A DNA stretch of 64,000 nucleotides from assembly GCA_020891255.1 (NCBI GenBank), contig BQFW01000012.1:1798001-1862000 (forward strand). The letters are read 5' to 3'. Shown here piece after piece: positions 14,868 through 19,897 of the stretch (positions within the stretch are counted from its first letter, which is position 1; each line of letters opens with the position of its first letter). Under the pieces are notes generated by a model that worked only from the letters and a program-made list of their open reading frames with translations, was not told the origin of the DNA and searched no databases. Source of the DNA: Entomortierella parvispora E1425 (taxonomy: Eukaryota > Fungi > Mortierellomycota). Both the position numbers and the translations under genes were made by a program.

Positions 14868-17800
14868 ATGACAAACCAGCCCATCTCTGTCTCGATTGCG
14901 ACGCCTTTCAACTCAGAGTTCTCGTTGGCGTCTCTTGCAGAGTCGGCCCTTGACGAGCACGAGCACGAGCACGCACGTCCCTCTTCCCCCACTTCAGACT
15001 CGATTATCGTCAAAAAGACCAACCGCTTTTCTTCAGACCAAGGATACCATTCAGGCACATCCGGTTCCAGTACTGTTTCGGACGAAGACATGCCTTTGAC
15101 CTATTCCAAGCACCACAGCGGAGGCACTGCCACCAGGACCATCCTTTCTTCCAGCACTTTTACTTCTTCCTCATCAACAACCACAGCAGCAGAGGTATCA
15201 ATGGCTTCGCCGCCTGTCAGTCCCCTCTCGACTTCAAGCAGCCACCACAGTCAATTCCCTACTGATGACGCTGACGCTGACGAAAACAACAACAACAGCG
15301 TCAGCACAAGTAACCACACAGACATGGCTTCCCCCCTGCCCACATTTGTGTTGCAAACATCATCCGTGTCGCAGGATTTTACCTCAGCACCGCAGGACTC
15401 GACCTCAACGCAGCAGGATGCGAACCACACGACCTTTTCCGACACTGTCCAGATCATGGGTATCTCAGACTCTGCAACGATTGTCGTGCATGATGAGGAG
15501 GTCAGCAACAGCGGCGGCAGCGGCAGTAGTGGAACAGATGCGGGCCAGGACAGTGACAGAGACAGTCATTCAGAGGGCCAGCAGAATCAGCCGCGTTATC
15601 TGGACCCGAACAGTAACAATGGCCAGAGCCAGAGCCAGAACCAAGTCCACAACCATATCCGTGCCCGCACGGTCTCCGGGTCAGACACTGACAACATTGA
15701 CCGAGAGCGTGATTTTCGAACGGACAGGGAGGCAACCACGCCGACTTTGGAGGAGATGGGACTCGGAGGACTGGACGAGCTAGGACTCCGGGTACTGCTC
15801 CACAACGCCTTTGAGGTCATACAAGAAAAGGAACGAGGTATGTCTGTCTCAAAGTTCTGCTTTGTTCAAGCTTCCCAAACGCCTTCGCGTTCATTTCGCG
15901 GTTGTTATTCGTCGTTGTCCTGGATCGTCTCAAGTCTCACCCTGGATTCTCTTGTCTTTGCGTATGTTTGTAGATCTAGATATGGCTGCTGTGATGGGTC
16001 AGGACCTTGTCGAGACCAATGCATCCCTGAAGGCCAAGCTCGAGCACATCCTGACACAGCTTCGACAACAGCGTGTACACCGTACCCGCCAACTGACCCC
16101 GCCTAGGACCATCATTCTCTCGCCTCCACCTGAACTGCCTATTGGAAGTGTCTTGAGCATGGATGGTGCTGATGATGAAGGCGGCAACAGTGGAGACGAA
16201 AACTGGGTAGATGATTACGAGCCCTCTCGTTCATTACTCCATGTCGCCTCCTCGCCATCTTCTTCTGGAGCTGCCTCGTCTTCCTTCAGTCATCCAAACT
16301 CACCCTCGGCCGTAGGAGGATTTACCCACCACCATCACCATAACATCTCGTTCCGACGCAGCACAAGTCATAGCGGAATATTGCGATCGCGCTCTCGACA
16401 GGATATTGAAAAGCTGGCTACACTCGAAGATCTCAACTCAGAGCTGCAGGCCAAAGTGGATGCAACCACCAAGGAGTTGAAGCAAGGAAAGAGACAGGCG
16501 TTCAAACGTTACCGCAAAACCGAAAAGGAACTGAAGGCTGTCAAGGACGAGTTGGAACGGACGACAGTCAAGGTGGTTGACTTGGAGGAGCAAAACGGAC
16601 GGTTGATCGAGGCCAGCAAAACGCTGAGGCTGCGGAGGATCCAACTCAAGAACCAGCTGCCTGCCCCAGGATCAATCCCTGGATCTACTATGGTCGCTAT
16701 GGCCGTGGAGATGCAAGGAGATGACATGACGCTCCAAGAAATGTTGGCAGAGGATAACAGGATCTTTGAGGAACTTCGGGATCGACTCCAATCTTTGGAC
16801 CGGAAGAATGCCCAGCTCGCACATCAGAAAGCCGAGTCTGACAAGAGGGCCCAGCAGTCGGCACAGGATTTGGCAGATGTGCGAGCAGATAACGAGGATC
16901 TGTTGACGAATCTGTGCGGATATTCTGATCTCCGGAGCAAGTATGAGGAGCAATCGGCGCATGTGGCTGAGCTGGAAAACACTATCAAGGAGCTTCAGAA
17001 CACGATCAGTATCAACGCAGCAAGGCTATCTCAGATGAACTCGCCAATGTTGTCGCCAATGGTGCCCTCGAGCCCTGTCCAGGCTGTTTGGAGACGAGAT
17101 GATGCTGACTTTAAGGCTCTGAAGACCATTCTGCATGGATCGAGCCCTGGTCCTATGGCGCCTCTCAGATCTCCTGGGTTGAATGGTCAACGCCGTCCTC
17201 GTCGCACACTTTTGGCAGAGCTTGAATCAGAGTGGTTCAGAGATGTGTCGTTCTTTGGGCCGCCTCGTGTGGCAGAGCAGCCACAAAATACCATCCCGAC
17301 AATTCACATGGACAGCGATGGCGTTAACGGAGGTCACCAACACCGTAGCAACAAGAGAGCTATCAAGAACCACCGCCACGAGTCAGAGTCCGAGTTCTTT
17401 ACGGATGACACTGGTGGACGTGTCAAGGGCTGGCGTCAGCGTGTCCAGGATCTGGACTACTCGGATGAGGCTTGTGAATCTTCGAGCTGTGTGAGAAAGC
17501 AGCGCAGTGGTCGAGTCCAGCGTCGACACCGATTCAAGTTTGCTGGAGAGAGTGATACGGACCATCATGATCAGACTCAAGGAGAGGACAGCGATGTGGA
17601 GCGGTATCAGCTCCGTAGAAGAGGCAACCGTCGTCGTCGCCGTCGCTCCAGTGGATCGAACTCAGGATCGGTCTTTGGATCGGAGGATGATCCTTTCGAG
17701 GTGGACGATGGACAGCTTTCCGACTGCTCTTGCTCCGATCCAGAGCATGACCACGTATCCCGACCCGACTCTCCTGGATGCTGCTGTCATCTCTATGAGG

Positions 17801-18114
17801 ACGAGTACAGCGGCTACTCTTCCTTTGATGATGACAACATGCACATGCTGCACGACCGTGATGAGGAAGAGAGTGTCATTGGCTGGGCTCACTTTGAGGA
17901 TTACGACGCGTCCTCTCTTGGTTATGACCAGAAGCGCGACGGCTATTATTTGGGTCGACGACCTCGTCGGGGTATCATCGGCATGATCCAGAGCGTGTTT
18001 TTGCTCGTGCGATTGATCTGGCGCTGGTGTCGGTTCATTGGCATCCTATCGACTGCCCTGGGTATTGCCATCTACCGTGGTCCAGATGCTCTCTTGACCG
18101 ATGGCCATTACTAA
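14868..18114 (+). CDS. Coiled-coil protein with a CC1-box-like motif and C-terminal hydrophobic anchor; putative motor cargo adaptor
   Basis: Exons 14868-15837 and 15974-18114. Ser-rich disordered N-terminus, spliced motif EKERDLDMAAVMGQDLVETN, heptad coiled coil at about 16410-17035, TLLAELE motif, and hydrophobic C-terminus VFLLVRLIWRWCRFIGILSTALGIAIY. The gene is clear; the function is inferred. Confidence 0.8.
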
Positions 18115-18431: not shown

Positions 18432-19897
18432 TTAAGCGGACACCTTCTTGGAGGAGCGCTTCTTGGTGCTTGAGGAAGACTTCTTGGTCTTGGTGACGTT
18501 GGTGACGGGTGCTTCCTCGACAACGGGCTTCTTCAAGGTACCATCGGCGTTCAAGTGAGGATATCTGGAAGGATCGCTGGAGTAGCTGGATCCGCCCGAG
18601 AAGAGGTTGAAGACGACACCGGACAAGGAGCCGGCCATGATGTAAACCATCCACTTACTATTGGTCGCAACAAGAAAATATTCGCTGTCAAAACAATGTT
18701 CACATCCAAACGGGCAACCAAAGACAAACGAGATCAAAAGAATCGACTTACGGCATCCAGGAGGTGTACTGGCCCATCCACTCCATGCCTTCAGCGTACT
18801 TCTCGAACCAGACGGACCTGTTGGATTAAAAAATAATAATATGATAATGGTCAGCAAAAGCATGCCTACAGAGGAGCATGAATGCGAACAAGGGCAAGTT
18901 TGTTTTTCTTACAGCTTGGAGTAAGGGCTCATAGGTCCGTCCAAGATAGGGTACATCTTGTATTTTTCTTCCTCGATGAACTCAACCAAGAACTGGGTGT
19001 CGTTTCTCTGGTAGGGGATCTGACGGACTGTGAAATCAGGTTTGAAAAGTGAAGGATAACAAGAGTCAATACGAGAAAAGAACAGGGCGGCACGCGACTA
19101 GTCAAAAAAAAAAAAAAAAAGGATGAAGGTGTCCCAACTTACATTCACCATCCTTGGCATAGATGACATAAGGAAGACGGGCAGGGACAAAGAAGCGAGC
19201 GGCAACGCGGGCGCTGTCCTCGACCCAGACAGCCGAGAACTTTGTGGTGGTCTCGTTCTTCATCGTGATAGCAGCATCGACAAAGGTAGGGAAGTAGTCG
19301 GCGCAGGGGGCGCTGGTAGCTGAGCAACTGTTTCAAGAGGACAAGAAAGTTTTTTATCGTTAGAGAAGGTTCTGACGGTCATTTTTCCATGGCTTTTCTT
19401 CTTTCATTTTCAGGAGTCGAATTCCCTTCTCCCAAGCGTAAAAGTGTCAGTCCGAACTTTTCAGTTCCTTGTTCCTGCGACTGATCCCTTCCATTGTACC
19501 CATCAATCCAATACCTCCTCTTGCCAGCGTCGATCCTTGAAGCTTCCTCGACGCATTCCTTCTTTCCTGAATAGAATCCTATCCATGACATCAAGAGTAG
19601 CAGTTCAACTTACAAGGTGATGATCCACTCGTCCTCAAAGATGGTCTCTTTGTAGTTGACGTCTGTCACGTTGAAGATGTGTCCCTCGGGGTCAGCCTCA
19701 AAGATTGGTGGTGGTGTGCCTCCGAGGACGATGGCCTTGCCGATCTGGAAGAGTCCCTTAAGGCCACCGCCCTCCTTGGCGGCCTCCCTTTGAGCAGCAG
19801 CAGCAGCAGCCTCTTCTTCGCCGTACTGGGCAGCGGCGGGGGAGGTCAAGAGGGCGACGGTGGCAACGAAGGCCAGTGTTGACTTGAGGAACTTCAT
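18432..19897 (-). CDS. Thioredoxin-fold type I membrane protein (TMX-like) with signal peptide
   Basis: Exons 19897-19614, 19327-19143, 19027-18913, 18817-18752, 18657-18432. Signal peptide MKFLKSTLAFVATVALLTSPAAA, Trx-like segment EWIITFCSATSAPCADYFPTF...LPYVIYAKDGEFR, C-terminal TM segment and Lys/Ser-rich tail. Confidence 0.75.

Follow-up and report, generated by a model that had tools for sequence, protein, structure and literature searches.

To our knowledge, no dynein activating adaptor of filamentous fungi other than Hook is well established. Hook (HookA/Hok1) is a coiled-coil adaptor with a Spindly-type motif (10.64898/2026.04.25.720804). It reaches dynein's light intermediate chain (LIC) through the Hook domain and endosomes through FTS-FHIP, and has neither a CC1 box nor a membrane anchor. 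The best solved-structure match to the fungal protein described here is BICDR1/BICDL1 (PDB 6f1t, 6f1u, 6znm), in which the coiled coil is continuous, a QxxH HBS1 lies at approximately +35 and an [ST]LLSE[LI]E motif comes after the coiled coil. BICDR1 is reported to bind Rab6 via its C-terminal coiled coil. A CC1 box is also present in TRAK2 (ERDRDLELAARIGQALLKRN). In TRAK1, CC1a is very short and gives way to a break close to an acidic patch (10.64898/2026.04.25.720804), and TRAK reaches mitochondria through Miro. CDR2/CDR2L are CC1-box adaptors that couple ER sheets to dynein; they are soluble and are recruited by the integral membrane protein kinectin (PMC11580933). KASH5 (PMC10071310) and Nesprin-2 (PMC11310688) are integral-membrane proteins, anchored at the C-terminus, that themselves act as dynein adaptors. 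Each has a canonical KASH domain of the nuclear envelope, and KASH5 binds LIC by an EF-hand pair rather than by a CC1 box.

The window analysed was a stretch of 64,000 nucleotides from the Mortierella-family soil fungus Entomortierella parvispora E1425, in which a two-exon gene was delineated on the plus strand (Table 1). The spliced product comprises 1036 aa. Every sequence element named in the original prediction was found in its place in the window. Exon 1 encodes a poorly conserved, S/T/Q/N-rich N-terminal region and then the CC1 helix's N-terminal half (...LDELGLRVLLHNAFEVIQEKER). Its product is collinear with the N-terminus of the Gryganskiella orthologue (P0002), with the same start (45% identity, E=3e-61). 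The protein read across the 15837|15974 junction is IQEKERDLDMAAVMGQDLVE; the junction codon G|AT specifies D (codon 324), giving the joined reading ...IQEKER-D-LDMAAVMGQDLVETNASLKAKLE. A CTRAY-like element (GTCTCAC) lies in the intron approximately 35 nt upstream of the acceptor. Further introns in exon 2 were unnecessary, given gap-free collinearity with 22 orthologues.

Table 1. Features of the predicted gene and its product (positions are those of the window; residues are those of the spliced protein).
Feature	Position	Strand	Details
Exon 1	14868..15837	+	Codons 1-323 and first base of codon 324
Predicted CC1a helix	15777..16080	+	Residues ~304-359, intron-split; mapped from M. alpina orthologue
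CC1 box	15825..16014 (coding parts 15825-15837 and 15974-16014)	+	EKERDLDMAAVMGQDLVE, residues 320-337; spans intron
Intron	15838..15973	+	136 nt, GTATGT...TGTAG, phase 1
Exon 2	15974..18114	+	Last two bases of codon 324 to TAA stop at 18112-18114
Disordered linker	16081..16386	+	Acidic patch DGADDEGGNSGDENWVDDYEP at ~16162-16224, His/Ser-rich stretch; AF2 pLDDT <50
Second long helix (CC1b)	16387..16656	+	Residues ~462-551; AF2 helix 154-243 of M. alpina orthologue
Loop QLPAPGSIPGSTM...	16657..16722	+	Invariant, breaks coiled coil, Mortierellaceae-specific; from alignment and AF2
Third long helix (CC1c)	16723..17037	+	Residues ~574-678; AF2 helix 266-370, pLDDT 87-93
Spindly-like motif RRTLLAELESEW	17200..17235	+	Core LLAEL 17209-17223, residues 736-740
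Disordered acidic/basic region	17236..17973	+	Conserved blocks; AF2 pLDDT <50; from composition
C-terminal hydrophobic helix IIGMIQSVFLLVRLIWRWCRFIGILSTALGIAIY	17974..18075	+	Residues 991-1024; juxtamembrane part, then TM core; predicted anchor
Tail RGPDALLTDGHY	18076..18111	+	12 residues after anchor, conserved, net charge -1

Alternative junctions were scored with an HMM of the CC1 region comprising 27 non-Mortierellaceae relatives and zero Mortierellaceae sequences. The 15837|15974 product scored 50.0 bits as one contiguous domain. Products of alternative in-frame donors and acceptors all scored lower (28.9-39.9 bits), and the two unspliced ORFs scored 11.7 and 22.1 bits. The Gryganskiella orthologue has an intron at the same codon and in the same phase; the exon flanks are conserved, while the intron itself is diverged and indel-rich. 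Among other Mortierellaceae, five fragments of unspliced ORFs finish with ...EK[ED]R, after which four of the five read G and unrelated residues. The predicted splice from 15837 to 15974, which would recreate the CC1 box as originally proposed, is supported by evidence that is entirely comparative. The two unspliced exons gave weak generic coiled-coil matches in a Pfam scan and no match to HAP1_N, whereas all ten spliced orthologues tested matched this profile at positions 72-111 (E 1e-3 to 1e-6). This agrees with the earlier observation that neither unspliced ORF holds the intact motif.

The AAVMG core of the CC1 box occupies 15985-15999 (residues 328-332). Lack of conservation of AAxxG among orthologues had been named beforehand as a possible refutation; the motif is invariant in 23 Mortierellaceae sequences (A5, A6 and G9 of the Mortierellaceae alignment) and in a 30-sequence alignment covering four lineages. 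When the family profile was searched against the PDB, the BICDR1 chains of dynein-dynactin cryo-EM entries were matched on the CC1 box with E=6e-12 (domain 7e-9), and TRAK2 was matched on the same segment with E=1e-4. A single-sequence search returned TRAK2 at 0.009 and BICDR1 at 0.06. The aligned segments are BICDR1 104-142 and TRAK2 117-156, and identity to BICDR1 is approximately 45% over a 38-residue CC1 segment (SALREKERDLTLAAEIGKSLLENN against SVIRQKEKDLVLAARLGKALLERN). Statistically solid similarity to known adaptors is confined to these approximately 40 residues, and on this profile evidence the CC1 box is homologous to that of animal adaptors, in line with the type originally assigned to it.

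The limits of CC1a were transferred by alignment from the AF2 model of the M. alpina orthologue (helix 19-74, pLDDT 85-89). The helix ends in QRVH (16069-16080), a QxxH-type candidate for HBS1 located 28 residues past the first Ala of the CC1 box. QxxH is conserved in Mortierellaceae only, and lies at +28 rather than at about +34/35. HBS1 chemistry varies, and the dynein sites are not conserved in fungi (10.64898/2026.04.25.720804). Unlike BICDR1, the fungal protein has no HBS1 conserved across the family and no Rab-binding region, has a predicted membrane anchor of its own, and shows a long disordered break after CC1a.

The original prediction had placed a long heptad coiled coil at approximately 16410-17035. 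Long helices were indeed found there (~16387-16656 and 16723-17037). The coiled coil is not continuous with the CC1 helix, because a disordered linker of approximately 80-110 residues separates the two. Short CC1a, break and acidic patch together parallel the arrangement in TRAK1, although neither TRAK1 nor FIP3 has been described with a break as long as this linker. In the family members scanned, an acidic 12-mer occurs between +15 and +98 downstream of AAxxG, and W78, D81 and P84 of the linker (alignment numbering) are invariant in Mortierellaceae. CC1b opens with a family-wide LExxNxEL block, in which L166, E167 and N170 are near-invariant in the 30-sequence alignment. The AF2 model consists mostly of isolated helices and disorder (mean pLDDT 61). 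Its three predicted helices total 226 helical residues, against the approximately 200-300 coiled-coil residues expected in CC1-box adaptors from LIC-binding site to pointed-end motif, and the number of helical residues from the CC1 box to the downstream motif is similar to that in BICDR1.

That downstream motif, originally described as Spindly-like, fits the Spindly consensus L-phi-x-E-phi (10.64898/2026.04.25.720804) and comes after the coiled coil, as [ST]LLSE[LI]E does in BICDR1. The consensus is short. TLLxExE (T412, L413, L414, E416, E418) is invariant in the 23 orthologues, and L427, E430 and E432 are near-invariant in the 30-sequence alignment. The counterpart in Mucoromycota and Zoopagomycota is a near-invariant TLLSELE; that in Basidiomycota is R[ST]L[GQ]SEL (e.g. 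RTLGSELG), which is recognisable and has G at the second hydrophobic position of the consensus. The family-wide form can be written R-T-L-(L/G)-x-E-L. With BICDR1 at full length, HMMER reported a second, weak domain (3.4 bits) that aligns the motif collinearly with SLLSEIE, the Spindly motif of BICDR1 itself. AF2 models a short helix at this position (pLDDT ~60). LLAEL sits 408 residues after the CC1 Ala in the E. parvispora protein, and the offset is 235-345 residues in most members outside Mortierellaceae, compared with approximately 228 in BICDR1. In BICD2 the Spindly motif occupies residues 336-340 (10.64898/2026.04.25.720804).

The region between this motif and the C-terminal helix (17236..17973) contains Mortierellaceae-specific short motifs (SFFGPPR, ACESSSCVRK, EDSDVERY, LSDCSCSDP, PGCCCHLY and EESVIGWAHFEDYDASSLGYD).

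Residues 991-1024, which correspond to the C-terminal hydrophobic segment noted at the outset, form the only hydrophobic region of the protein; the N-terminus is not hydrophobic. AF2 models this region as a 35-residue helix (pLDDT 86-93), within which there are three Arg residues. Hydrophobicity is moderate, with a best 19-residue Kyte-Doolittle window of 1.55 and a 14-residue core of 2.03. W676, F679, L683 and A686 are invariant in the 30-sequence alignment. A lone C-terminal hydrophobic segment, a short tail and a non-hydrophobic N-terminus are the features expected of a tail-anchored protein, and the helix, a predicted membrane anchor, is the sole candidate for that role.

Taken with the modelled helices, these sequence features point to a candidate dynein-dynactin adaptor of the CC1-box type that is BICDR/TRAK-like and directly membrane-anchored, and this is the reading that we consider probable. 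The C-terminal helix would insert post-translationally and leave the N-terminus in the cytosol. CC1a, CC1b and CC1c are predicted, from helix length and family resemblance, to dimerise. By homology with BICDR1 and TRAK, the AAxxG CC1 box would bind C-terminal helix 1 of LIC, which in human LIC1 has the paired Phe residues F447/F448 (PMC11580933). Approximately 226 helical residues might then run along the dynactin filament while the acidic, disordered linker loops out, and TLLAELE, judged by consensus fit and conservation, would dock on the dynactin pointed end (p25). More speculatively, the disordered region of approximately 250 residues may tether the complex to the membrane and carry lineage-specific regulatory or cargo motifs. 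Such a protein would recruit, and probably activate, cytoplasmic dynein-dynactin from a cytoplasmic membrane surface. The outcome would be minus-end-directed movement of the organelle carrying it, or microtubule pulling if the membrane is fixed. TRAK depends on Miro to reach its membrane, whereas the fungal protein is predicted to insert in the membrane itself; compared with CDR2 and kinectin, adaptor and anchor would be one polypeptide.

It is unlikely that the protein is instead a membrane-bound coiled-coil tether or organelle shaper of golgin/CASP-like type, with a CC1-like helix that serves dimerisation or a non-dynein partner and resembles adaptors only through a shared ancestral helix. 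Beyond the CC1 region of approximately 40 residues, only generic coiled-coil families were matched, all below threshold, and the HBS1 motif is not conserved. In ESM Atlas, the whole protein returned HAP1_N and CDR2-like clusters first at 0.81, within the chance range, and CASP_C and TMF clusters scored equally; no usable match to the C-terminal half was obtained. A tether is harder to reconcile with AAxxG, which is exactly the LIC-binding signature and stays invariant in more than four fungal lineages, and with the occurrence of AAxxG and [ST]LLSELE in the order seen in BICDR1, the combination that defines CC1-box adaptors.

The tail beyond the anchor bears on a second alternative, in which the protein would be anchored in the nuclear envelope or spindle pole body and act in a functionally KASH-like manner, with the GPD tail lumenal, for dynein-coupled nuclear migration in coenocytic hyphae. 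Dynein would be bound by the mechanism proposed above, with nuclei as specific cargo instead of organelles in general. KASH5 (PMC10071310) and Nesprin-2 (PMC11310688) provide precedents for dynein adaptors at the nuclear envelope, the family is present in hyphal and coenocytic lineages, and beyond the anchor lies a short, conserved tail whose G694 and P695 are invariant family-wide in the 30-sequence alignment. Neither the KASH domain of these proteins (PF10541 in Pfam) nor the EF-hand pair of KASH5 was found in the fungal protein. Past G-P, RGPDALLTDGHY and its counterparts vary from approximately 6 to >30 residues with unrelated endings, and tail charge differs between clades, from -1 in E. 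parvispora to about +3/+4 in basidiomycetes. KASH-domain proteins have a defined lumenal C-terminus (PPPX type), which KASH peptides are generally regarded as requiring. This alternative was considered distinctly improbable.

HAP1_N (PF04849) is a 307-position domain with a gathering threshold of 33.9 bits. All members tested scored 19-30 bits on profile positions ~70-114 only, and sub-threshold matches were obtained for 22 of 30 wider family members. The Milton/TRAK kinesin-associated domain (PF12448) was matched in none of the Pfam scans, which covered the unspliced exons, orthologues and family members. The protein is not a member of the TRAK/HAP1 family, since HAP1_N is matched at only 40 of 307 positions and below threshold; TRAK/HAP1-type membership did not survive this comparison, and nothing was found to support the kinesin part of the original prediction. 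The W-acidic consensus is L/M-D/E-W-D/E, and GDENWVDF, considered as a kinesin light-chain motif of this type, was rejected as a poor fit. FFAT or LIR readings of GWAHFEDYDAS were likewise set aside as fitting their consensus motifs poorly. A bidirectional TRAK-like scaffold binding kinesin as well as dynein is very unlikely: TRAK2 ranks among the best sequence matches in the PDB, but the Milton/TRAK kinesin-binding domain and any identifiable kinesin-binding motif are lacking and HAP1_N similarity stops at positions 72-111.

The architecture of the putative adaptor extends well beyond the Mortierellaceae, to which the original prediction had too narrowly confined its retention. It was found in Mucorales, Glomeromycotina, Zoopagomycota and, within Basidiomycota, three subphyla, including Ustilago, with a recurring CC1 box, coiled coils, R-T-L-(L/G)-x-E-L motif and WRWCRF...GP anchor; all these members are annotated as hypothetical proteins. 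Chytrid and Allomyces relatives were also identified. A literature search turned up no relevant report of CC1-box, HAP1_N or tail-anchored adaptors in fungi. Spindly likewise combines a CC1 box with an L-phi-x-E-phi motif, and early-diverging fungi carry both families, as illustrated by a 'Protein Spindly' in Mycoemilia scoparia (P0179). Proteins of the Spindly type terminate with a CaaX box (..ECNQQ), in contrast to the hydrophobic helix and GPD tail of the present family. No ascomycete member occurred among the sampled matches. Ascomycota rely heavily on dynein, yet are unrepresented in that sample. The family is uncharacterised and spread over many fungal lineages, so far not including Ascomycota.

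We tentatively suggest, at somewhat less than even confidence, that these proteins represent an ancient class of fungal CC1-box adaptors integral to the membrane, extending from Zoopagomycota to Basidiomycota and apparently lost or unrecognisable in Ascomycota, which would link organelles directly to dynein-dynactin, with no need of a Rab, Miro or kinectin-type receptor. We know of no earlier CC1-box adaptor with adaptor and membrane receptor in one polypeptide. Aspergillus, Neurospora and yeasts have been the main organisms in dynein screens, which, if the reading is true, would account for such a class having been missed. The question is directly testable, because relatives occur in Mucorales and in genera with genetically tractable species (Ustilago). 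The reading bears on the way in which nuclei, ER, mitochondria and cargo other than endosomes engage dynein in filamentous fungi. If true, the anchored adaptor would give fungi, besides Hook, a second way of attaching cargo to dynein, and the BICDR/TRAK-type adaptor module would be older than the animal-fungal split.

The gene was modelled as two exons (see table), giving a spliced product of 1036 residues with ...LHNAFEVIQEKER-D-LDMAAVMGQDLVETNASLKAKLE at the junction. Alternative junctions were scored with a CC1-region HMM built from 27 relatives, all outside Mortierellaceae. The proposed junction scored 50.0 bits as a single contiguous domain, against 28.9 to 39.9 bits for all other in-frame donor/acceptor pairings, and the splice product given in the original prediction was confirmed. 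The two unspliced ORFs scored 11.7 and 22.1 bits and neither matched HAP1_N in a Pfam scan, in agreement with the earlier view that neither holds the motif intact. Unspliced translation of 15973-18111 coincidentally gives the same residues as spliced exon 2, junction Asp included. P0002 (Gryganskiella cystojenkinii) was the closest annotated orthologue, with 75% identity across exon 2. Its gene shares the start codon, is collinear with exon 1 from there and carries an intron at the identical codon and phase; exon flanks are conserved, while intron sequence has diverged and length differs. A branch-site-like element is common to both introns. In other Mortierellaceae, five fragments predicted as ORFs only finish in ...EK[ED]R, followed in four by G and unrelated residues, the pattern expected if translation ran on into an intron located here. 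This comparative evidence shows the splice 15837|15974 to be real.

Gene features in the window and segments of the AF2 model (M. alpina orthologue)
Feature	Position	Strand	Length	Details
Exon 1	14868-15837	+		
Intron	15838-15973	+	136 nt	GTATGT...TGTAG, phase 1
Exon 2	15974-18114	+		
RRTLLAELESEW	17200-17235	+		translated exon 2
CC1a helix			56 residues	contains CC1 box; pLDDT 85-89
Disordered linker			80 residues	between CC1a and second helix
Two helices			90 and 105 residues	invariant PAPGSIPGSTM loop between; pLDDT 87-93
Short helix				on TLLAELESEWF; low confidence
Disordered stretch			~220 residues	before C-terminal helix
C-terminal helix			35 residues	confident

A Nup192 nucleoporin gene lies upstream of the Gryganskiella orthologue (L001:1-12). 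In the window, an opposite-strand ORF (18432-18863, -) begins approximately 300 nt beyond the stop codon, has a K/S-rich tail at its end and is probably the last exon of a convergent neighbouring gene.

Thirty Mortierellaceae orthologues were found, each annotated as hypothetical. Identities to the window protein were 92% for a Logan protein, 75% for Gryganskiella cystojenkinii (the closest named) and 53-59% for Entomortierella entries. Conservation of AAxxG and TLLAEL had been set beforehand as a test; in an alignment of 23 of the 30, AAxxG and T-L-L-x-E-x-E were without variation. Many further blocks were conserved, including the C-terminal RWCRFxxILSTALxIAxYRGPDALLTD. A lineage-specific insertion of approximately 28 residues with TNNHLEA-like repeats directly follows the CC1 box in P0014, P0017, P0019 and P0021 (Linnemannia; columns 378-405 of this alignment). 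The disordered parts (window 16189-16224 and 17236-17973) contain short, conserved, Mortierellaceae-specific motifs without known match: GDENWVDDYEP, ACESSSCVRK, EDSDVERY, LSDCSCSDP, PGCCCHLY (a Cys cluster) and EESVIGWAHFEDYDASSLGYD. Two of these are acidic W-x-x-F motifs.

PDB searches with the CC1 region of a single orthologue returned TRAK2 (9dgv; E=0.009) and BICDR1 (E=0.06). With a wider-family profile, the CC1 box was in each case the site of the match: BICDR1 chains of dynein-dynactin cryo-EM entries gave E=6e-12 (domain 7e-9), TRAK2 1e-4. At the level of sequence, these matches show the CC1 segment to be homologous to BICDR1 and TRAK. In full-length BICDR1, a second domain paired the family ..RRTLLSELESEWF.. 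collinearly with the Spindly motif ..TSLLSEIEQSM.., suggestive only at a weak 3.4 bits. HAP1_N was matched by 10/10 full-length orthologues tested, over profile positions 72-111 of 307 only and at 19-28 bits, against a cut-off of 33.9 bits. The animal-like adaptor reading therefore held for CC1 homology and failed for HAP1_N membership. In sequence the window protein shows the hallmarks of CC1-box adaptors, with HBS1 present only as a candidate, but it falls outside Pfam HAP1_N and has neither a Milton nor a KASH domain; it is therefore best described as working like BICDR/TRAK, not as a TRAK/HAP1 family member.

The AF2 model, made with a 30-sequence alignment, had a mean pLDDT of 61 and shows the helices of the family protein as predicted features. 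Approximately 226 helical residues separate the CC1 Ala from the coil end, nearly the same as the ~228 residues between CC1 and Spindly motif in BICDR1. The CC1-to-motif offset was 235-345 residues in most non-Mortierellaceae members and 374-430 in Mortierellaceae, owing to insertions. In the literature the motifs are defined as AAxxG (CC1 box), QxxH/Y together with an acidic patch (HBS1) and L-phi-x-E-phi (Spindly consensus); in TRAK1, an unusually short CC1a precedes a break (10.64898/2026.04.25.720804). HBS1 lies ~30 residues past the CC1 box (PMC11580933). A strongly acidic stretch was present at +15 to +98 past the CC1 box in members scanned; QRVH at +28 matches QxxH and is lineage-specific. 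LExxNxEL (window 16420-16445), with which the second helix opens, is near-invariant across the family. HMMER aligns it on BICDR1 LEQEKHEL, which holds a QxxH, so LExxNxEL is another candidate for HBS1, provided that the disordered linker is looped out.

The sole hydrophobic region of the window protein, residues 991-1024, is only moderately hydrophobic (best 19-residue Kyte-Doolittle window 1.55; 14-residue core FIGILSTALGIAIY, 2.03). The C-terminal helix contains three Arg residues and is followed by a 12-residue tail of net charge -1, a charge that varies from clade to clade. Region and tail fit a candidate tail anchor. The hydrophobic C-terminus and RRTLLAELESEW were both present as originally described.

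A putative membrane-anchored CC1-box dynein-dynactin adaptor is the reading we consider moderately probable. The coiled-coil protein would dimerise, AAxxG would bind LIC, the coil would run along dynactin, TLLAELE would dock at the pointed end and the C-terminal helix would insert into the membrane. The coil and anchor could instead belong to a membrane tether unrelated to dynein, which appears unlikely. Within the adaptor reading, a nuclear-envelope version takes a small share and an added kinesin role a slightly smaller one; Pfam found neither KASH nor Milton domains in the window protein. Overall, the observations of splice, motifs and hydrophobic C-terminus were upheld, and the interpretation was supported in part.

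An exhaustive profile search across 1.84 billion representatives gave 156 matches. CC1 box (typically EKERDLxLAAEIGKSLLENN) and related anchor (..WRWCRFxxxLxxAxxIxLWxGPD..) occurred together in 58 of the proteins retrieved, Mortierellaceae orthologues included. Cluster look-ups placed such proteins in Glomeromycotina (Entrophospora), Mucorales (Apophysomyces, Hesseltinella), Zoopagomycota (Piptocephalis) and Basidiomycota (Ustilaginomycotina, Tremellomycetes, Pucciniomycotina), and an additional search added Ustilago, Sporisorium, Pseudozyma, Puccinia and Mycena. Retention in Mortierellaceae, as first proposed, was therefore too narrow. All 30 sampled clusters were fungal, with Ascomycota and animals each 0/30; a more divergent Ascomycota member may exist. 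Across 30 aligned sequences from these lineages, the CC1 box, LLxELE motif and anchor (W, F, L, A, G-P) were invariant or near-invariant, and basidiomycete members read R-[ST]-L-[G/Q]-S-E-L at the Spindly-like site. Alignment thus shows CC1 box, Spindly-like motif and anchor to be conserved family-wide. The literature searched held no description of a fungal member.

P0124, P0148, P0161 and P0179 (Calcarisporiella, Endogone, Coemansia, Mycoemilia), one annotated 'Protein Spindly', form a second CC1-box family ending in a CaaX box (..ECNQQ and similar), so at least two adaptor-like families with a CC1 box occur in these early-diverging fungi. In chytrids and blastoclads, the CC1-box proteins examined (P0079, Allomyces; P0088, Spizellomyces; P0101, Chytridium) differ in their C-termini. 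Allomyces P0079 keeps SLISELERAW, then ends in an amphipathic GFFGLLDSL and lacks a clear TM, a hint that the CC1/Spindly-like pair is older than the anchor. The window protein itself is a member of a widespread, uncharacterised fungal family.
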